NCBI GenBank assembly: GCA_025558095.1
Contig: JAIVFI010000037.1
Coordinates: forward strand, 310,001 to 374,000
Source: Hyaloraphidium curvatum SAG 235-1
Taxonomy: Eukaryota > Fungi > Monoblepharomycota
Direction of reading: 5' to 3'
Length of the DNA stretch: 64,000 bases
Shown: positions 46,810 to 56,800 of the stretch, piece by piece
How positions within the stretch are numbered: the stretch's first letter is position 1
Layout of the letters: every line of letters begins with the position of its first letter
Made by a program: the position numbers and the translations under genes
The notes under the pieces: model-generated
The model's input: the letters and a program-made list of their open reading frames with translations, nothing else
Told to the model about the DNA's origin: nothing
Database searches by the model: none

Positions 46810-49272
46810 CTAATGATGTACCGTGCTCCTCGAAAAGACGCGCAGCTGCCTCGGCCTTTCGTCCCAGCATGCAAAGCAGCCCGTGAACCCGTCCGTTTCC
46901 TCCCCTTGCAGCACTTCCTCGACCTTGTGGCCTGTGATTGCTTCAAAGCGACCTATTGTCTCCGCAGCGAACCTCCTCACGGCCTCGGAAGCCTCGGCTC
47001 CTATCCAAAGGTATGCCTCGGCGCCGAGCCGGAAGACGAGGGCGCACGAGGCCCGCCGGAGGTTCCATTGTTCCGGCTGTTCCTCGGCTATCCGGTACAG
47101 CCCCTCGGCGCACGAGACCGTGAGCAGCCGCGCAGGGGCCAGCTCCGCGAGGTGGTGCGAGGCGCCGTCGGGCAGCAGATCCCAGAACCATTCGGGTTCG
47201 GATCCCTGCTCCACGACGGAGGGCCGGCTCGCGCTTCTGCCCGCGAGAATCTCCGCGCACGCATCGAGCAAGGCTTCGCGCGCTGCCCGCCGTGCCCGGC
47301 GCCCGATCCAGAGCACCGGACCTCCCTGTCCGCGCTGCAAGATCGCCGCTCCAAAACAATCCAACCTCGCTACGGACGCCAGCACCTCGGTCGCCCTGAC
47401 ACGGCACTTGGCGGCGCGCAGGTGCATCATTCCGTCGCGCGCCTCCCGCCTCCGAACCTCGACGTAGCCCCCTAGCAGCCCGAGCAGCGCATCCGGCTCC
47501 CGCCCCTGCGGCGCATCCACGACTTCCAGTTTGCACCCCCATCTCTCCGCAACGGCCTCGGCGAGCTGCCCCGTGGTGCGGAGGAGGAATGCCGCGCGGC
47601 CGAGCAGCGGCGCGTGCCGGCCGCGCCAGAGGTACGCTGCACACGAGGGCACCGAGGGGCGGGAGTGGAGGTGCACCCAGGTTTCGTCGTCCAGGGGCGG
47701 CCGCGCTGGGTGCGACAGGAAGGTCCGAGTGCGCTCCGAGAAGAGGAAGGAAGAGATCTGAGCGTCCGCGTCGTCTGCGTCGTGGGTTAGGCCCGAGACG
47801 GACAAGTCGTCCGCAGGCGGAGGATCCGGCAGCGAAGGTCCCAAAAGCGGGCCCCAATCCACCGCCGGCGGCGGCCGCGGCGGCTTGACCATGCTCAAAG
47901 GGTCAAACTGCCCCCGCTCCTCCCACCGGGCAAACTTCTGCCTGAACGATTCCGAGGTCGGCCCGCTGCCGTCCCTGAACCTCCTCACGTCCGTCCAACG
48001 CGGCCTGCGGGGGTCCAGGGGGACCAGCGCGGCGAGGAGGTCCGTGCCGGCGGACGGATCCGCGGCGGAGCCGGTCCAGAGAAAGAGCTCCGTGCCGGCA
48101 TCCAGGGCGCAGATGGAGCGGGGACCACCGAGGTAGCTGCGGTCGGGGATGTATGAGCCGGGGAGGGGGACGCGGTAGGCGTCGAGGCGGGCGGGATCGA
48201 AGCCCTCGACGGCGATATCGTCGATGCTTTGTGGAGTCGGATGCGGTGAGATGATACCAAAGGAAGCCAATGAGGGAGTGACTTACCGATAGAGAGATAT
48301 TCGAGGTACAACCGGCGGTCCGTCGTCTGAAGGGCCATCCAGTATCGGAAGCCCGAGTCGGTCGAGGAACGTCCATGCTTCCTCCTCCTCCCCCGTGGCG
48401 TAGTCCCTCCAGTCCTCCTCCAGCACGACCATGCGACCATCTCCGCCGTGGTCCCATGCCAGCATTCGAGAAGCGGCCACCAGCGTGGCTTGCAGCCTGT
48501 CGCGGGCCGACTCTGGATTCCTCGCGCAGTGCACGATGCAGCCCCCGAACTGGAGGTCCACTACTGTCACACCGCCGCCGTCCCTGTGCAGCACCGGTGC
48601 CGCGTGCACGAGGCGGCCCTTTGCCCAGCGGTACACGCGGAAGCGCGGCACGGCGGAGGGGCCGCGGCCACGGAACCTCCGCCAGCTGCCCGGCGCCTCC
48701 CCCACGGAAATGAGGGCGCTCGGCCACGGCTCGGCGGCGCCGTCCACGACAAAGTCCGCGCGCGGGAACATGGCGAGGAATGCGGGCGTCTCGTCGCCGG
48801 GCTCCTCGCGGAAGACGCGCGCCACGCCGCCGCCCATTGCCGCCAGCGACGCCTTGCAGCCGGCGGCGAGCGCGGCGGCGACGAACCGCTTGTCCGCCGC
48901 GGCACTCGGGCCGACCCACAGCCGCACGGCGCGGGACCCGTCGGGCCGCGCCTCGACAAAGACGTACGCGTCCGCGGGGTGAACGGCCGGCGGGAAGGCG
49001 AGCGGCAGCGGCTCGAGCCCCGCGACGGCAAAGCACAGCGGCGCGTCGGCAGAGAGGCCGTCGAGCAGAAACCGCACGTCGGGCCGGAAGGCGGAAAAGG
49101 CCGGCGGGCGAGCGGGCGGGGCGCACGCAGACGGGCCGTCCGGCACGGGCAGCGGCGGCAGCCCCGGGTCGGAAACCCCCGGCACCGCGTCCTCCGCCGG
49201 CCCGGCGCACTCGTCCGCGTCCGGCCGATGCAGCCGCAGGCCGGGCGCCATTGTCCCTGGACCCGCGAACAT
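46810..49272 (-). CDS. Divergent flightless-I-like gelsolin-repeat protein lacking LRRs (intron starting GTAAGT at ~48286)
   Basis: VRLWVGPSAAADKRFVAA...FREEPGDETPAFL; YLWRGRHA...KLEVV; EQGSEPEWFW; QGEETDGFTGCFACW are colinear with FLII gelsolin repeats. Confidence 0.72.
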
Positions 49273-49406: not shown

Positions 49407-51104
49407 TCATGCCGCCTCCCGCAGCGGAATCTCGTCCCCCTCGGCACAGGGACCGCCTCCCGCCGCGCCCACGGGCTCCGCCACGGCTTCGGGCAGATCG
49501 ATCTTGCCCGTCGCATCCAGACCCGCAACCACCCTCGCCAGCAGCGCCCCCGATACGCAGCAGCACGCGAAAAACATCTCGGGCAGCAGGAATCCCGGAT
49601 CCGCGTTGACCAGCGCTGCCACGAGCACCGGGAAGACGAGAGTCGAGAGGTTGAACACTGCTGTCGCGAAGCCGAAAGCCGACCCCTGCAGGCCCGTGTC
49701 CTCGGGCACCAGCAGCGGTATCGCCGACCACAGCACGCCCAGCAGCCCGAACCCGAACCCGAGCACGACCAGCGCCGGCACCGGCGAGGCCACGAACCCG
49801 GGCGGCCGCGCCAGGCCGATCAGCAGGTGCGCCGAGGCCATGACCAACCCGCAGGCCGTCAGCGTGTGCGTGCGCCGGCCGAAGCGGTCCGTGAGGCTGC
49901 CGACAAAGGGCGCCATGACGGCGCTTATGGTGTCGGGCAGGCCCATGGCCTCGCCGGCGGTTTCGGGGTCGCCGGGGTACCACTTGCGCTGCAGCAGGGC
50001 GGAGTGGATGGTCTGGAAGGGGATCACGGTCGCGTAGAGCAGCGCATTGACGAGCATGAGCACGTGGAACGCCGAAGGAAAGTCGGAGAAGGACGGCAGC
50101 GCGGGGAGGGGCGGAAGGGCAAGCGGCGACGTCGGGCCGCGAAGGTTCGGGCTCGGCGGCGCCGTTAGGCGCACGGTCGAGAAGGAAGCCCGGCTGACGG
50201 GTATCAGCACGTTGCTCAGGCGCGGAGAGGAAGGCGACCGCAAGCGGTGCTTGGGTGCGCCTTCGTCCGACAGGTCCGGCTCGTGGCTCGTGGGCGACAT
50301 GTCGCCGGGGCCGACTTTGATGGAGGATGAGCGCGACAGGCGGCCGGCCTGCGGCGAAGGAACAGGTTGCGTCCCGTCGCCTTCGGCGTCCGACAGGTCG
50401 CCGTCTTCCAAGTGGAAATAGGTTCCCCGCTCCGCGCCGTGGGCCCCGGGTGTGGACGAGCCTTCGCCCTCCCCGCCACTCGACAACCGGTGGTCCAGCC
50501 AACCCAACGCGGTCGCGCAGCAGAACGCCACCATGCACGTCGCCGTCCCCACCCAAACCGCCGCCGGCTCCGACACCCGCACCGCGATCACGGGCGAGAG
50601 CAGGTCGTTGGCCACGGACCCCATCCTGGCGATCGCCAGGTTGAGCCCCAAGGCGAGGGCCAGCTCCCTCCCGCGGAAGTACTTGGCCGTCACCGTGTTC
50701 TGCGCGACCATCAGGGATTCGCCCCCGATGCCGAAAAGCAGCCTGCCGAGGAGCATGGCGGCGACGCTGCCGCCAGAGTTGCCGACGGAGAAGACCACCT
50801 GCCCGAGCAGCTGCACCGCCGACAGCGCCACGAGCAGCCTCCTCACGCCCCAAGTGTCAATCAGGTAGCCCCCGAAGAAGGGCAGAACCACGTTTGGAAG
50901 CGCGTACACGCCGTACATGAGCCCGGCAGCGTAGGCGAAGCCTCCGTCGGTCATGCCAAGCTGGGACTGCATTGGCTTTGAAAGTGACGCCGGCAGGTCG
51001 TAGGCATAGAAGTTGGAAAACCCAGTCCAGCAAGACAAGGCCAAAACGGCCCAGCGGAGGCCCGGGTTTCGGGCGAGGCCCGGAGGATCCCCATGAGGGG
51101 ACAT
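49407..51104 (-). CDS. MFS transporter, MFSD1-like (intronless)
   Basis: YAYDLPASL, YALPNVVLPFFGGYLID, GRLLFGIGGESL, FRGRELALALG. Confidence 0.9.
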   Translation of the reverse strand: MSPHGDPPGLARNPGLRWAVLALSCWTGFSNFYAYDLPASLSKPMQSQLGMTDGGFAYAAGLMYGVYALPNVVLPFFGGYLIDTWGVRRLLVALSAVQLLGQVVFSVGNSGGSVAAMLLGRLLFGIGGESLMVAQNTVTAKYFRGRELALALGLNLAIARMGSVANDLLSPVIAVRVSEPAAVWVGTATCMVAFCCATALGWLDHRLSSGGEGEGSSTPGAHGAERGTYFHLEDGDLSDAEGDGTQPVPSPQAGRLSRSSSIKVGPGDMSPTSHEPDLSDEGAPKHRLRSPSSPRLSNVLIPVSRASFSTVRLTAPPSPNLRGPTSPLALPPLPALPSFSDFPSAFHVLMLVNALLYATVIPFQTIHSALLQRKWYPGDPETAGEAMGLPDTISAVMAPFVGSLTDRFGRRTHTLTACGLVMASAHLLIGLARPPGFVASPVPALVVLGFGFGLLGVLWSAIPLLVPEDTGLQGSAFGFATAVFNLSTLVFPVLVAALVNADPGFLLPEMFFACCCVSGALLARVVAGLDATGKIDLPEAVAEPVGAAGGGPCAEGDEIPLREAA

Positions 51105-51431
51105 TGCGCTGTCCGGCTGGGCGGATCTCGCTGCCGGCCGCCGGACCACCGGAGCGGAACTGCGTTATCAAGAGCAGGAGAAACAACACGCCATTGCGGC
51201 CCGGCGATGCCCAGTTGCTGCCCGGGGAGCGGGACGCAAGGCCCAGTGTTTGCCGGCGCGTCAGTTCGCGCGCCCCGCCACCACCGGCCCGCAATCGACC
51301 GCGATCGATCCCGAACGCGATAAGCCGGGGGAGCAAATAAAGCGACTCGAAACGCCGGTCGCGGGAAAGAACCTCCATCGGCGATTTCGATTGGATCGTT
51401 TCGCGCCCGACACGTGTTCGGAACGACAGCA

Positions 51432-52983
51432 ATGGCCGCCCCCTCGCAGCCTCTATCGGAGTGGGCAGCAGCCCTCGGGGTCAAGTACTTCCTGGTCGCG
51501 TTCACGGACCTGTTCGGTGTCTCGCGCACGAAGCTCGTGCCCACCGCGGCCATCGACGAGATGTGCACCGAGGGCGCCGGGTTCGCGGGTTTCGCTACCC
51601 ATCTGGACATGAGCCCTTCTGATCCCGACATGTTTGCGATTCCGGACCCGTCGTCGGCCGTGCAGCTGCCGTGGAACCCAGAGATGGCTTGGGTGGCTTC
51701 CGACCTCGTGATGGACGGCAAGCCGGTCGAGCAGTCCCCTCGCCGGGTCCTGAAGAGGATGATCGCCGAGGCCGCGGAGAAGGGGTTCCAGCTCAAGGCT
51801 GGCGTCGAGTGCGAATTCTTTCTGCTGATGCCGGACAAGCATGAGCTTTCTGATGCTGCGGATCGCCGCTCGAAGGCCTGCTACGACGCGGGAGCGTTGA
51901 TGCGACGCCTTGCGGTCATCAGGGAGATTTGCGACGCCATGCTGGCCATGGGATGGCGTCCGTACCAGTGCGATCACGAGGATGGGCAAGGGCAATTCGA
52001 GATGAATTGGGAATATGACGATGCCTTGCTGGTGAGTGATTTGACGGTGCGTTCCACCTCACGCTCAACCGTCTTTCTACAGACCGCAGACAGGCACGTT
52101 TTCTTCAAGTTCATGGCGAAGCAGATCGCCGAGAAGCACGGTTTCCGCGCGACCTTCATGGTGGGCGCCCGCGAGCGAGGCTTCTGTTCGCCAGCTGATC
52201 TTGACCAATCGTCCAGCCGAAACCTTTTGCCGACCTCACCGGAAGCGGCGCCCACATTCATGTCAGCTGCTGGAGCACCACTGATAGTTCCAAGAACCTC
52301 TTTATCCCTGCGGACAAGGCCGACGCGAAGGCTTCGGGCTTCTCGTCTTTTGGGCACTCGTTCCTCGGCGGCGTCATGAAGCATTGCGGGAGCATGGTTG
52401 CCATCACCAACCCGACGGTCAACTCTTACAAGGTTCGTCGGATCGCGTGCCGGAATCATATCAGCTCACGCCTTTATGTCTTCAGCGGCTCGGAGCTTCG
52501 ACCACGGCCTCTGGAGCGACCTGGTCGCCCCGGACCGCAACGTACACGGGCAACAACCGGACGCACGTTGTGCGGATACCGGCCCCCAACCGCTTCGAGC
52601 TTCGCCTCGCCGGTTTGTGTCCTTCTTGATCGCCTCGGTCTCGCACTTGGCTCATTTGTCTTTCGTCAACAGACGGTGCCGTGAACCCTTACCTCCTCCC
52701 CGCCGTCGTGCTCGCCGCTGGTCTGGATGGCCTGGAGAAGAGGCTGGATCCGGGCCCGCCGGCGCTGTACAACGCCTACACGACGCCTCCTCCCGAGGGC
52801 ACCGAGGTGCTCTCGCATTCCATGGTCGAATCCCTGAAGAAGCTGGAGGACGCAGACAAAGGGCTCAAGACGAGGCTGGGCGATTCGTTTTTGGCATCTT
52901 ACCTCAAGTTGAGGAGGGAGGAGTGGGAGGACTACCTCGCAAAGATCAGCCAGTGGGAGATAGACCACACGGTGGATTGCTGA
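51432..52983 (+). CDS. gmaS: Bacterial-type GlnT/GmaS glutamate-amine ligase (gamma-glutamylmethylamide synthetase-like); introns 52032-52082, 52161-52216, 52433-52485, 52613-52672
   Basis: FTDLFG..RTKLVP, GAGFAGFA, QLPWNPE, GVECEFFLL, CYD..ALMRR, DHEDGQGQFEMNWEY, ATFMPKPF, SGATWSP, GNNRTH, RFELRLADGAVNPYL. Confidence 0.88.
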
Positions 52984-53137
52984 AGCTACCGCCTCAATCT
53001 CTATGTACGCTATTGTAGTTATCCGACGCTCAGCCTTGAATCGCTGCCATCCAGCCACGAACTCCAGAGAGGCGTCAGCCTCCGATCGCGCAGTTGGCGG
53101 GCTCCACCACGTTTGACCCCCTGGCAATCCGGCGAAA

Positions 53138-53729
53138 ATGAACGTCTTCCGGGGCAACGTCACCGGCATAACGGCCGGGAAGCTGCTTTCAGAGATCGAA
53201 ATCTCGACTCCAACGCGCCTGAAGCTTGTTGCTGTCGTTACGAACGAGGAACTGGAGGCCCTCAATTGCACTCCGGGCCAACAGCTCAACGCGTCGGTTC
53301 CGGTGAGGAGGCCAGCGAGTTGAATGAGCAGATCCTCAATGACATTTGAATGGTACGTGGGCCACTCGACAGCCAGCCGCTGTTGTTCTCGTGCGAGCGG
53401 AGTCGACCGGACCGCCTCCTTCGCATTCGCGCTCGGCGAGCTCGTTCTCGGTTGCGGACGTCACGACATCGGCCCGGAACAAGGTACTCTGTCGCATTAC
53501 GGATGTTTCCTACGACTCTGAGCTCGGACCGTCGAGCACCGTTGGGGCTGTCGCGTGTCGAGTGGCCTGCGAGGTTCAACCACACGGAGGCGCTGGAGCA
53601 ATCGTGGGAGGCGGCGAAAAGATCGAGGCCCTCGTGACCACAGAGAGCGCCAAAACAATGAAGTTGGCACAGAACGAGTTCGTGTGGGCCCTGTGGAAGG
53701 CGTTCTCCGTTTCCCTCACCAAGGGGTAG
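53138..53729 (+). CDS. Tandem TOBE/Mop (di-mop, molbindin/ModG-like) protein, ~173 aa; intron 53303-53372
   Basis: Domain 1 MNVFRGNVTGI...LVAVVTNEELEAL...ASVP/PAAVVL. Domain 2 TSARNKV...IEALVTTESAKTMKL...VWALWKAFSVSL carries the SARN and TxES motifs. Confidence 0.75.
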
Positions 53730-53851
53730 TAGTCTTCGCACATTCGCACTCATTCCGTGTCGAATAGAAAGCTTTTTTGTCAAATCTTCGCACTTCTGCT
53801 CTCCATTCCAAGTCAAAGATCGAGACAAAGCTTGTCTATGCTAGACGCGAC

Positions 53852-56800
53852 TTACGTCGCCGGCGCCTCCGAATTCGACGCGGCACCTGCCTGCGGCTCG
53901 GCAAGCCGGGCAAGCCGCTTCTGCTCCTTTTCAAGCGCGATGTTCCTCAGCATCTCTTCGGCCTCCGGCCCGGTTTCGTGCACCATGCTCCGGAACCGCC
54001 CGTCTGGCTTCTGCAGCAGCTCGTGAGGGGTGCCAAACTCCGCCAGCTCGCCCGAATCCATGACCTGCGAAGCGCAAATCGTCAGAACGATGAAGCGATC
54101 GATTAAAGCTGCTCACCATTATTAGATCGTAGTCGATAATCGTCTGGAGGCGGTGGGCGACGCAGAGCACCGTTGACTGCGCAAACAGCCCCGTCTCGGA
54201 CCTGATCGCCGCCTGGATGAGCCTGTCCGTCGACAAGTCGATATTCGCGGTGGCCTCGTCCATTACGATGAGCCTGAGTGAAAGGGTGGCCCCAGGTGAG
54301 CTCCGGAGGCCTCCCGCCGCGTTCCGGCAACCTACCGCGTGTTCTTCAACACCGCCCTTGCGACGCAGATCAGCTGGCGTTCAAATCAGCTAGCGGTTGC
54401 TAATTGTCGTCGCATCTCCCTCCCACCTGGCGCTCGCCAACGCTCCAGTTGCCGCCTTGGTCCAGCACCGCAGAATCCAGCTTCCCGGGAAGGCGGGACA
54501 CCTTGTCCTTCAGCTCCACGACCTCAAGGGCATTCCAGATTCGCTCGTCGCCGTAGCTGAAAGGATCTTGGTCAGTGATTCGAATCGCGCGGCGCCCCAT
54601 TGCTGCAACGAACCGGTTGAACGGGTCGATGTTGAAACGAAGGGTCCCCTTTGCGGTTGGTCAGTGATTCGAATTTCGCGAATTTCCGGCCCGCAATTAC
54701 CTTGAACAAAAACGGTTCCTAGTATATTCGGACGGCGGTCAGCCACGAAGGTCATCAGCGAAATAGCAGCTCACCTGGGGGATGATGGAAATCGAAGACC
54801 GCAGATCGGCCAGACCCAGGGTCGACGTCGCGAGCCCGTCAATCACGACGCACTTCTCCGGGTCCGGTTCCACGAGCCGGAACAGGGCGGATATGAAGGA
54901 CGACTGGGCCGGCTGTCAGTTCGCTCGGGCTGGCGACAGCAAGACGAAGAGATACCTTTCCGGCACCGGTGCGGCCGACGATGCCGACCTTGCTTCCAGG
55001 ACTGACCGATACAGTTATTCCGTTCAGAACCTTCTGGTTCGTGACGGGGTACGTTAGCGACATGTCCTTGATGTCGACTTCGCCGTGCATCGGCCACCCC
55101 GGGGGCGGCTTCACATCCGTGTGCGCCGGGGGTTCCGAGGGCAACTTCGTGTACTCCAAGACGCGTTCGCTAACGAAAACAAGAATGAATCAATTTGATC
55201 TGGCGAAGGGCAGGCGAGGCACGCACGTCGCGACCATCAGATTCTCCACCTCCGTCGATTGTCGGACCTATTGGGGCAAAGTTAGACCAGAAACGTGAGA
55301 TCGACAAGTAGTGGTACTTACGGCCCACTGATTCAAGCCCAGGAGCTGAGAAATGTAGCTCAGAAGCAGGCCGACGAGGCCAGGGGTCAAGGAGTCTCGC
55401 AGGCCGACGCACAAGAAGGCCGTGGCCCCAAGGAAGAAGCCGCAGAGCATGTCAAGGCGGAAGCCAACCCAACGAGCACAAGAGATGAACTAGAGGGGGC
55501 ACGTATCAGATGAAGAACTGCTAACTGCCTTCAATGTTCTTCACCCACCGAGTAGAACAGCGTAGAGTTGATGTCCTGCAGCTCAAAGAACCTCGTCACG
55601 AACCGCGGTCCGGCGCGAAAAGCGCGGATGACGGAAAGTCCGTCCAGCGTTGCGGGAATAGCGGAATAGACTGGCGATCGCGACACCGACTCCAGTCTCT
55701 TGACTTGGCGAGATGTCCGGATGTACAATCGCCGGAAGATCCAGAAGATCCCGGCCAAGAACTGGGTGAACGAATTGTCAAGAAAGTTCAACGAGAACGC
55801 TACGCAACTAGCTCACCGGAATGAGGATGAGCACCCAAGGAACGAGGACACAGGCGAGGACAAGCACTCCGGAAATCATCGCGCAGCACTGCAAGAAGTC
55901 TGTCGAAGGATTGTGAGAAAGGTGCCGGCTCATCCAATGAATCGCAGCCTACCGAACATCGTAAGCGGTAGCATCTATCGAGGAACGAAGTGAGACGTGT
56001 GCACGATTTGCCGTCAAGGTCACCAACCTCGTCGATCTGATTCAGGTCCTTCGAGAATCTGGAATCGGCGTCAGCCAGCCGTCTACGAGCTATCCACCGC
56101 ACCATCGCTCGCACCTGTTGAGAACTCTGCCGTGCGGGTTCGTCTGGAACCAACTCAGAGGAGCACTCATGACGCAGTGGAGGGCATCCCTTGACAGGCC
56201 GTTGGACGAAGCCAGGGCCGTCATGTAGAAGATGAGCGCCCGTGTGAGAGAGACGCATACGAGTCCGGCCACCAGGCCTCCGTAAATGGCCAGGTTCCGA
56301 GGGTTGCGTTGAGATTCAGGCGACTGGTTCGTCCACGAGGAGAGCCACCAATCGCACATGACGCGCAGCGCCTCTCCCAGGGCCATCATGGACAACAGGA
56401 AGAAGGCCATGAACTTCCCTCCGCCGCGACTGAAGTACTCCAAGTAAACGCCACCCTTGACGCTCCCAACCGCGCGATCCTCAGCCACGAACTCCTTGTT
56501 CGTGTCGTCCTTGGCGCCAGAGTCCTTGGCCGTTGCCCCAGCAGCGGCCGTTGCCGGCGCAGAAGCTTCCGGTTTCTTCTTGTCCGGCCGAGACAACGTC
56601 ATCGGAGGCTGCGGCAGGTTCGACGGCGGAGGAACCAAAGACAGGCGCCGGGCGGCCCTGATCTCGCCCGTCGGCGTCCGAAGAAGAGGCTTGAGCCGCT
56701 CCACGCGCATGGTCCCCTCGTTCTTGCCCAGCTCCTCGGAATGATCGGGCACGGCCCCCTCATCGTCCTCGTCGTCCTCGTCGTCCTCCGAGTCGTGAAC

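Follow-up and report, generated by a model that had tools for sequence, protein, structure and literature searches.

The window analysed here is a stretch of 64,000 nucleotides from the genome of the aquatic fungus Hyaloraphidium curvatum (C37:310001-374000, on a contig of 531,647 bp, in an assembly of 31.9 Mb and 55 contigs). It holds two neighbouring genes of bacterial type, the first encoding what is probably a ligase of the GmaS type (gene 1, here gmaS) and the second a protein made of tandem Mop domains (gene 2, here di-Mop or Mop). Gene 1 occupies positions 51432-52983 of the plus strand and has five exons separated by four GT..AG introns (51, 56, 53 and 60 nt); gene 2 follows on the same strand at 53138-53729, with two exons and a single GT..AG intron of 70 nt. 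The spliced translations are exactly identical to two database proteins, P0001 (443 aa, annotated as 'glutamine synthetase') and P0121 (173 aa, annotated as 'hypothetical protein'), and the searches described below used either single exons or these two records, which equal the spliced models. The elements of the two genes are the following:

51432..52031, + strand: gmaS exon 1, encodes residues 1-200, with the beta-grasp N domain and the first part of the catalytic domain; TIGR03105 positions 3-196, 270.4 bits
52032..52082, + strand: gmaS intron 1, 51 nt, GT..AG, in frame and stop-free; skipped in the X2 RNA contig, present in the DNA contigs
52083..52160, + strand: gmaS exon 2; TIGR03105 positions 198-223, 31 bits
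52161..52216, + strand: gmaS intron 2, 56 nt; skipped in the X2 contig
52217..52432, + strand: gmaS exon 3, with ATP-binding His241 and Ser243; TIGR03105 positions 224-291, 73.6 bits
52433..52485, + strand: gmaS intron 3, 53 nt; skipped in the X2 contig
52486..52612, + strand: gmaS exon 4, with Trp311 (Glu-flap position), Arg323 and Arg328; TIGR03105 positions 292-333, 57.2 bits
52613..52672, + strand: gmaS intron 4, 60 nt; skipped in the X2 contig
52673..52983, + strand: gmaS exon 5, including the stop codon; TIGR03105 positions 335-435, 93 bits
52984..53137, no strand: gmaS/Mop spacer, 154 bp; the X2 RNA contig and DNA contigs run through it uninterrupted
53138..53302, + strand: di-Mop exon 1, most of Mop domain 1; Pfam TOBE, 32.6 bits; aligned to ModG 1h9j
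53303..53372, + strand: Mop intron, 70 nt, GT..AG, phase 0; skipped in the X2 contig
53373..53729, + strand: di-Mop exon 2, covering the remainder of domain 1, the conserved linker, the second Mop domain (SARN and KA motifs) and the stop; TIGR00638 Mop, 37 bits

Three public sequencing runs of H. curvatum carry this stretch, and two of them (X1 and X3) are DNA runs, whose contigs lie on the stretch without skips and bridge gmaS to Mop. A 2,835-nt contig from the third run (X2), which lies on 51303-53900 and beyond, skips 51, 56, 53, 60 and 70 nt, exactly the predicted GT..AG introns. Since all five introns are skipped, run X2 is RNA-derived, which shows that the two genes undergo transcription and splicing. 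For gmaS intron 1, the contig contains the spliced form only; retention of this intron would add 17 residues and leave the frame intact, which explains a 321-aa open reading frame (ORF) that reads through it. The initial description of the locus as two co-oriented, intron-bearing genes 154 bp apart is thus borne out, both by the exact match to the annotated proteins and by splicing of the RNA at each intron.

The X2 contig also runs 527 nt past position 53900, into the 3' end of a convergent ABCC gene, and the transcripts of Mop and ABCC probably overlap at their 3' ends. Because the contig extends towards ABCC, it merges neighbouring transcripts and is therefore uninformative on whether gmaS and Mop are co-transcribed.

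That the two families are typical of prokaryotes, and that the named best matches of gene 1 are all bacterial, could bring to mind bacterial contamination or a chimeric assembly. Such an artefact has practically no chance of being the explanation, however, given that five spliceosomal introns are removed in RNA, that contigs of the DNA runs bridge gmaS to Mop, and that the 531-kb contig carries eukaryotic flanks collinear with the SulP/STAS, gelsolin-like and MFS genes of a related fungus. The first-pass annotation, which had judged contamination unlikely on account of the eukaryotic setting, was right in this respect. Codon composition tells against an artefact as well, the GC content at third codon positions (GC3) being 0.80 in gmaS and 0.81-0.87 in the neighbouring genes, as opposed to 0.50 or 0.93-0.99 in the bacterial gmaS genes checked. 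A host-like GC3, together with four introns, implies that gmaS did not arrive recently. The locus provides a clean and well-documented case of two bacterial-type genes fully domesticated in a fungus, as seen in their introns, their host-like codons and their expression.

A probable glutamate-alkylamine ligase of bacterial ancestry

The exons of gene 1 tile the NCBIfam family TIGR03105 (type III glutamate--ammonia ligase, GlnT) end to end, from position 3 to position 435. Their summed scores amount to 525 bits (an approximation, as exons were added up), to be compared with a family cut-off of 469.6; exon 1 also matches Pfam Gln-synt_N and Gln-synt_C. Among solved structures, the best match is 7cql, the GmaS (gamma-glutamylmethylamide synthetase) of Rhodovulum sp. 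12E13 (514 bits over residues 9-443), followed by 9qur, a 'glutamate--methylamine ligase' (327 bits), whereas chains deposited as glutamine synthetase (GS) reach at most 217 bits.

The key residues of Rhodovulum GmaS (RhGmaS), including the catalytic Asp177, Glu186 and Arg312, have been assigned on 7cql (PMC7948447). For their mapping onto P0001, the chain numbering of 7cql was taken as native + 20, as read from the printed alignment. All of the assigned residues (17/17) are kept in P0001, namely Lys34', Glu126, Tyr151, Tyr178, Gln179, Asp181, Glu183, Glu190, Asn192, Trp193, Tyr195, His241, Ser243, Arg323, Arg328, Ala52' and Trp311. The last two of these replace the ammonium-binding Asp50' of glutamine synthetase and the Glu of its Glu-flap, respectively, and correspond to Ala48' and Trp300 of RhGmaS. 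The same 17 residues are invariant in 80 bacterial GmaS proteins, save for one Tyr/Phe position.

P0001 is therefore like bacterial GmaS (7cql, TIGR03105) in length and domain order and in its ATP, Mg/glutamate, methylamine-pocket and catalytic residues, and the chemistry of gene 1, to the extent that conserved residues can tell, is probably GmaS-type. The enzyme would be an ATP-dependent glutamate-alkylamine ligase, which would first phosphorylate glutamate to gamma-glutamyl phosphate. Methylamine, or another short amine, would be held in an acidic pocket (Tyr151, Gln179, Asp181, Glu183, Glu190, Asn192 and Lys34') and deprotonated by Asp181; finally, the tetrahedral intermediate would be resolved by Glu190, with Arg323 stabilising the phosphate, to yield gamma-glutamylmethylamide.

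Compared to its bacterial counterparts, the H. curvatum gene is nuclear, has four spliceosomal introns and is not accompanied by mgsABC or mgdABCD. A point that weighs against a strictly unchanged activity is that the protein deviates at 20 of the 179 columns whose conservation among bacteria reaches 95% or more. These near-invariant positions include two substitutions beside pocket residues, N180C and N186Q, in view of which the amine preference of P0001 may have shifted from that of bacterial GmaS.

The current database annotation of P0001 implies a different function, that of an extra ammonium-assimilating glutamine synthetase. The protein does belong to the GS superfamily, RhGmaS itself also accepts ammonium, albeit at a much higher Km (PMC7948447), and the downstream methylamine pathway was not found in the genome with Chthonobacter queries (see below). 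Nevertheless, we deem this function improbable, because the changes of Asp50' to Ala52 and of the Glu-flap Glu to Trp311 are exactly those of GmaS, because the score against 7cql exceeds by far that against any chain deposited as glutamine synthetase, and because the genome contains several further GS-family loci.

As for the origin of gene 1, its first 200 residues were compared with 5.8 billion proteins in a word-indexed search. The best 120 matches listed were bacterial or nameless, with 64-69% identity, and no other eukaryote was among them. Over its full length, gene 1 is 55-61% identical to the GmaS of 80 bacterial species (GTDB species genomes). In a tree in which the GS-like paralogues of the H. 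curvatum genome served as outgroups, P0001 nested inside an 81-row GmaS clade, with 99% support in the SH-like approximate likelihood ratio test (SH-aLRT). Without distant outgroups, a quick tree grouped P0001 with Pseudanabaenales cyanobacteria and one Polyangiales metagenome-assembled genome (MAG), at 96% SH-aLRT, and in a careful maximum-likelihood tree the same grouping received an ultrafast bootstrap (UFBoot) value of 94 and an SH-aLRT value of 82. Two observations speak against taking this grouping at face value, namely that the approximately unbiased (AU) test keeps open a placement with Methylobacteriaceae and Beijerinckiaceae (p 0.32), and that the H. curvatum branch is long. The bacterial origin of gmaS is nonetheless well supported by these comparisons, with more than one donor group remaining compatible.

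Two further candidates were rejected in the course of these comparisons. P0002, a 'Pseudanabaena' protein scoring 437 bits, had been considered as a close relative of P0001, but proved to be bacterial, 62% identical and internally duplicated. It derives from a 2,012-bp contig of a 'Pseudanabaena sp.' MAG and is a 381-aa GmaS fragment containing residues ~60-205 twice; a misassembly is probable and the HMMER score is misleading. P0037 (277 aa), considered as an exon-sized eukaryotic fragment, turned out to be a frameshifted gene on a bacterial contig.

In Chthonobacter, gmaS sits in the classical cluster mgsA-mgsB-mgsC-gmaS-mgdA-D, whose other genes belong to the N-methylglutamate (NMG) pathway, and at least one mgs or mgd gene is found near gmaS in 47 of the 51 bacterial loci that have full 8-kb flanks. 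When the Chthonobacter proteins were used as queries against the H. curvatum genome (G000), MgsA and MgsB gave no match. Orthologues of MgsC and MgdC were likewise not found, the former query retrieving only a GOGAT-like locus at 30% identity and the latter only a 31%-identity match to the C-terminal part of MgdC.

A gmaS gene in such isolation also occurs in bacteria. At eight loci, belonging to Pseudanabaenales (L027, L029, L037, L038, L042, L047 and L058) and to the Polyangiales MAG (L051), gmaS has neither an mgs nor an mgd gene within 8 kb. A search for an MgsC orthologue covered three Pseudanabaenales genomes and the Polyangiales MAG and found none in any of the four; the Methylorubrum control was positive, at 87% identity. 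Around the cyanobacterial orphan genes no clear partner emerged, the sole recurring neighbour being an alpha/beta hydrolase in two genomes (Pseudanabaena and Limnothrix). These orphan genes form the nearest group of P0001, which likewise has no NMG genes at its locus; on the other hand, P0001 is only 55-58% identical to them, and the sister relation is insecure, as the AU test indicates.

Because NMG synthase and dehydrogenase were not found in H. curvatum, just as MgsC was not found in the bacterial genomes whose GmaS groups with P0001, the role of gene 1 probably lies outside classical methylamine assimilation. Against this conclusion it must be said that the NMG genes were sought with the proteins of one species, Chthonobacter. 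The use of methylamine nitrogen, which the first-pass annotation had envisaged, is in any case weakened.

Methylammonium is a toxic analogue of ammonium, and cells convert it to gamma-methylglutamine. For this reason a trapping or detoxifying role seems preferable for gene 1: the formation of gamma-glutamylmethylamide would probably serve to trap or detoxify methylammonium-type amines, unless the product enters some other route. In practical terms, surveys that take gmaS as evidence of methylamine use may over-call, as the data point to a GmaS subgroup without the NMG pathway (Pseudanabaenales, the Polyangiales MAG and H. curvatum). The holders of gmaS now include a eukaryote.

The genome of H. 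curvatum contains about eight GS-superfamily loci. One of them, at G000:C23:174439-175888 (+) (loci L004 and L007), is a second gene of the GlnT/GmaS family, 40-45% identical to P0001 and with at least one intron. Its best family is again TIGR03105 (329 + 123 bits, in two pieces) and its best structure is 9qur (263 bits). As it falls outside the sampled GmaS clade, it represents a separate lineage and not a recent duplicate of gmaS. At another locus (L006, G000:C1:1118552-1119643, minus strand), a GS-like single long ORF of 482 aa has as its best NCBIfam match NF045547, gamma-glutamylputrescine synthetase (231 bits).

A molbindin-family protein in a eukaryote

P0121 consists of two tandem Mop/TOBE domains and nothing else. 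Pfam TOBE matches in two stretches, TIGR00638 Mop matches both exons, and residues 2-171 align to positions 7-139 of a hidden Markov model (HMM) built from 27 bacterial di-Mops (E 2.6e-27). The AlphaFold model (mean predicted local distance difference test score, pLDDT, 86.9; predicted template modelling score, pTM, 0.81) found as its best PDB matches in Foldseek the ModG structures 1h9j, 1h9k and 1h9m, with target TM-scores of 0.85-0.89, and then the di-Mop domain of ModE. P0121 is thus a stand-alone tandem Mop/TOBE protein similar in fold to ModG, the cytoplasmic molybdate-binding di-Mop of Azotobacter vinelandii, and to the molbindins Mop, Tub and the di-Mop of ModE. It differs from ModG in being eukaryotic and intron-bearing, in its size (173 vs ~141 aa), in extra inserts in the linker and in domain 2, and in the loss of the SAR residues and of the site Lys from domain 1. 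P0121 shares only 24-25% identity with ModG, and its identity to bacterial domains does not exceed 44%.

Relatives of P0121 are few. An exhaustive HMMER search of 1.84 billion representatives returned only two close clusters (P0122/P0178, 55% identical, and P0123, 53%); all other matches scored at most 52 bits and were as long as bacterial di-Mop, ModC or ModE proteins, in agreement with the initial remark that the two families at this locus are typically prokaryotic. Both relatives needed the exhaustive search to be found, as a word-indexed search with Mop exon 2 returned only P0121 itself. A metagenome scan with an alignment of the three eukaryotic Mops yielded no further loci. The third homologue, on the metagenome contigs L102-L104 (322-849), is a single uninterrupted ORF of 175 aa; its lack of an intron reflects either a loss there or a gain in H. 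curvatum and in the fungal locus (L013) that encodes P0123.

In phylogenetic analysis, the three eukaryotic Mops form one clade (100/100) that lies closest, among bacteria, to sequences of the Desulfovibrio sp. X2 type. Forming, as they do, a single eukaryotic clade among bacterial di-Mops, they are likely to be of bacterial origin.

What P0121 might bind can be judged by comparison with the type-2 oxyanion site described for Tub, which is made of Ser4, Arg6, Lys60 and Ala61 of one domain plus Ser40 of the partner (PMC11980592). Domain 2 of P0121 keeps every one of these residues (Ser88, Arg90, Lys164, Ala165 and Ser147), thereby sharing the type-2 residues described for Tub, Mop and ModE. Moreover, Ser88-Ala-Arg90-Asn91, Lys164-Ala165 and Ser147 are found in all three eukaryotic homologues, save for one Ala-to-Gly change. 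The protein would therefore be a cytosolic, ModG-like tandem-Mop protein that binds tetrahedral oxyanions (molybdate or tungstate) at inter-domain sites, of which only the one built by domain 2 (Ser88, Arg90, Lys164, Ala165) would be retained.

Domain 1 argues the other way. P0121 starts at the Asn of the SARN motif, leaving this domain without the Ser, Ala and Arg; the site Lys is a Pro; and the partner Ser is replaced by Glu38 in H. curvatum, though it is Ser in both relatives. As judged from the sequence, half of the canonical oxyanion sites are lost, and oxyanion binding by P0121 may be weak or lost.

A somewhat unlikely, yet serious, alternative is that the di-Mop has kept its fold and no longer handles molybdate, in which case its ligand would be another anion, or its role that of a protein or regulatory module. 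The degeneration of domain 1 and the presence of Glu38 would fit this idea. The eukaryotic homologues share three strongly conserved inserts, a 17-residue one in the linker and a pair in domain 2, and the two lineage-specific insertions suggest a new constraint. On the opposite side stand the near-complete conservation of the domain-2 site in the three homologues, the ligand-bound state of the ModG and ModE structures that the model matches best, and the use of molybdenum by the host. The H. curvatum genome contains six Oxidored_molyb loci, one MoeA gene and a MOT1 transporter (on C12), and the gene for P0121 is its sole TOBE locus.

According to two reviews, eukaryotes have no molybdate-binding or molbindin proteins (PMC12191840, PMC10385300), and within the library searched we found no report of gmaS or of a molbindin in Hyaloraphidium or in any other eukaryote. 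We tentatively suggest, as an idea with appreciable but less than even prospects, that P0121 is a working cytosolic buffer for molybdate or tungstate, which would make it the first molbindin-type molybdenum-binding protein in a eukaryote, long kept in the Hyaloraphidium lineage. If true, the storage or buffering of molybdate in a eukaryotic cell could be approached through a defined protein. The presence of a molbindin-family member in a eukaryote is the most notable part of our findings: the rule that molbindins are absent from eukaryotes has an exception, and this in an organism that has MOT1, molybdenum cofactor synthesis and several molybdoenzyme genes.

The adjacency of the two genes

The first-pass annotation had viewed gmaS and Mop as a horizontally acquired pair, possibly linking the use of methylamine nitrogen with the handling of molybdate, and had mentioned coincidental adjacency as an alternative. 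The comparison with related fungi makes use of two elements to the left of gmaS:

49410..51104, - strand: gene for an MFS transporter, which serves as synteny anchor; Pfam MFS_1, 110 bits; start codon set by comparison with L013
51105..51431, no strand: spacer of 327 bp, separating the start of the MFS gene from that of gmaS, left edge of the presumed insertion

P0123 is encoded on a 102-kb Logan contig (locus L013) that is collinear with the window between 42.7 and 51.1 kb. The shared order comprises an upstream gene, SulP/STAS (63-78% identity over the main segments), a gelsolin-like gene (inverted), the MFS gene and then, directly, Mop. The MFS gene is 69% identical over 196 aa to L013 8931-9518 (tblastx), and in L013 the start of MFS and the start of Mop are 240 bp apart. 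The L013 Mop has an intron of 91 nt, placed after the same Pro codon as that of H. curvatum, and a tblastn search with GmaS found no gmaS at this locus. The closest named relative of the L013 SulP is that of H. curvatum (704 bits), well ahead of those of Nowakowskiella, Gonapodya and other chytrids, and L013 thus comes from a fungus of the Hyaloraphidium lineage. On L102-L104, the gene after Mop is the DnaJ gene that also follows it in L013, and no gmaS was seen in the 321 bp upstream of the L102 Mop.

In bacteria, the two genes do not keep company either. An HMM scan detected a Mop/TOBE ORF within 8 kb of gmaS at none of 80 bacterial loci (0/80); as a control, the model detected P0121 at 2.6e-27 and the bacterial proteins P0133 and P0128, of ModE/ModC length, at about 1e-53 to 1e-55. 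Linkage between gmaS and mop is therefore found neither at these bacterial loci nor in the fungal relative. Mop predates the split of these fungi.

We consider it fairly probable that the two genes, though both of bacterial ancestry, are unrelated, and that their adjacency in H. curvatum is secondary. The di-Mop would be the older resident, common to at least two related fungi of the Hyaloraphidium lineage, one of which has the same MFS neighbour and the same intron position. The gmaS gene would most likely have been inserted into the MFS/Mop spacer after the lineages split, a deletion in the relative being less likely, and would since have gained four introns and a host-like codon composition. 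No flanking direct repeats and no convincing inverted repeats that could mark an insertion mechanism were found around gmaS. Some caution comes from the fact that the choice between gain and loss of gmaS rests on the locus of one syntenic relative, and on there being no orthologue among the best 120 matches listed in the word-indexed search. Moreover, one RNA contig covers both genes, leaving room for co-transcription.

Alternatively, gmaS and Mop could have entered an ancestor together on one bacterial fragment, with gmaS later being precisely deleted in the relatives. Co-orientation, a spacing of 154 bp, the bacterial type of both genes and the shared RNA contig are what one would expect in such a case. 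We nonetheless assign a joint transfer a low probability, since mgs or mgd genes, and not Mop, accompany gmaS in bacteria, and since the 240-bp spacer of the relative bears no remnant of gmaS. The bacterial kin of the two proteins also differ, being Pseudanabaenales or Proteobacteria for GmaS and Desulfovibrio-type di-Mops for Mop, as does the divergence from them (about 60% identity for GmaS vs at most 44% over one domain for Mop).

Returning to the view of two secondarily adjacent genes, the horizontal acquisition and domestication put forward at the outset hold as regards bacterial ancestry (well supported for gmaS, likely for Mop), introns and expression, whereas arrival as a pair does not. 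Nor is there any evidence tying the functions of gmaS and Mop together, the bacterial partners of gmaS being mgs and mgd genes; coincidental adjacency is, in light of the synteny and of the bacterial linkage, the better reading. More generally, a syntenic relative can reveal independent events, and cautions against taking adjacency for a cluster.

The MFS gene had itself been considered as a molybdate transporter, forming a conserved pair with Mop. This was rejected, as the protein matches MFS_1 and Sugar_tr and has no match to MFS_MOT1 or MFS_5 at E <= 0.01; the true MOT1 lies elsewhere, on C12.

Further rearrangements are visible around Mop. The gelsolin-like gene is inverted (window 46810-49272 vs L013 4268-7585) while its neighbours stay collinear, and downstream of Mop there is DnaJ in the relatives vs ABCC in H. 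curvatum. Together, the inversion and the DnaJ/ABCC difference place breakpoints on both sides of Mop.

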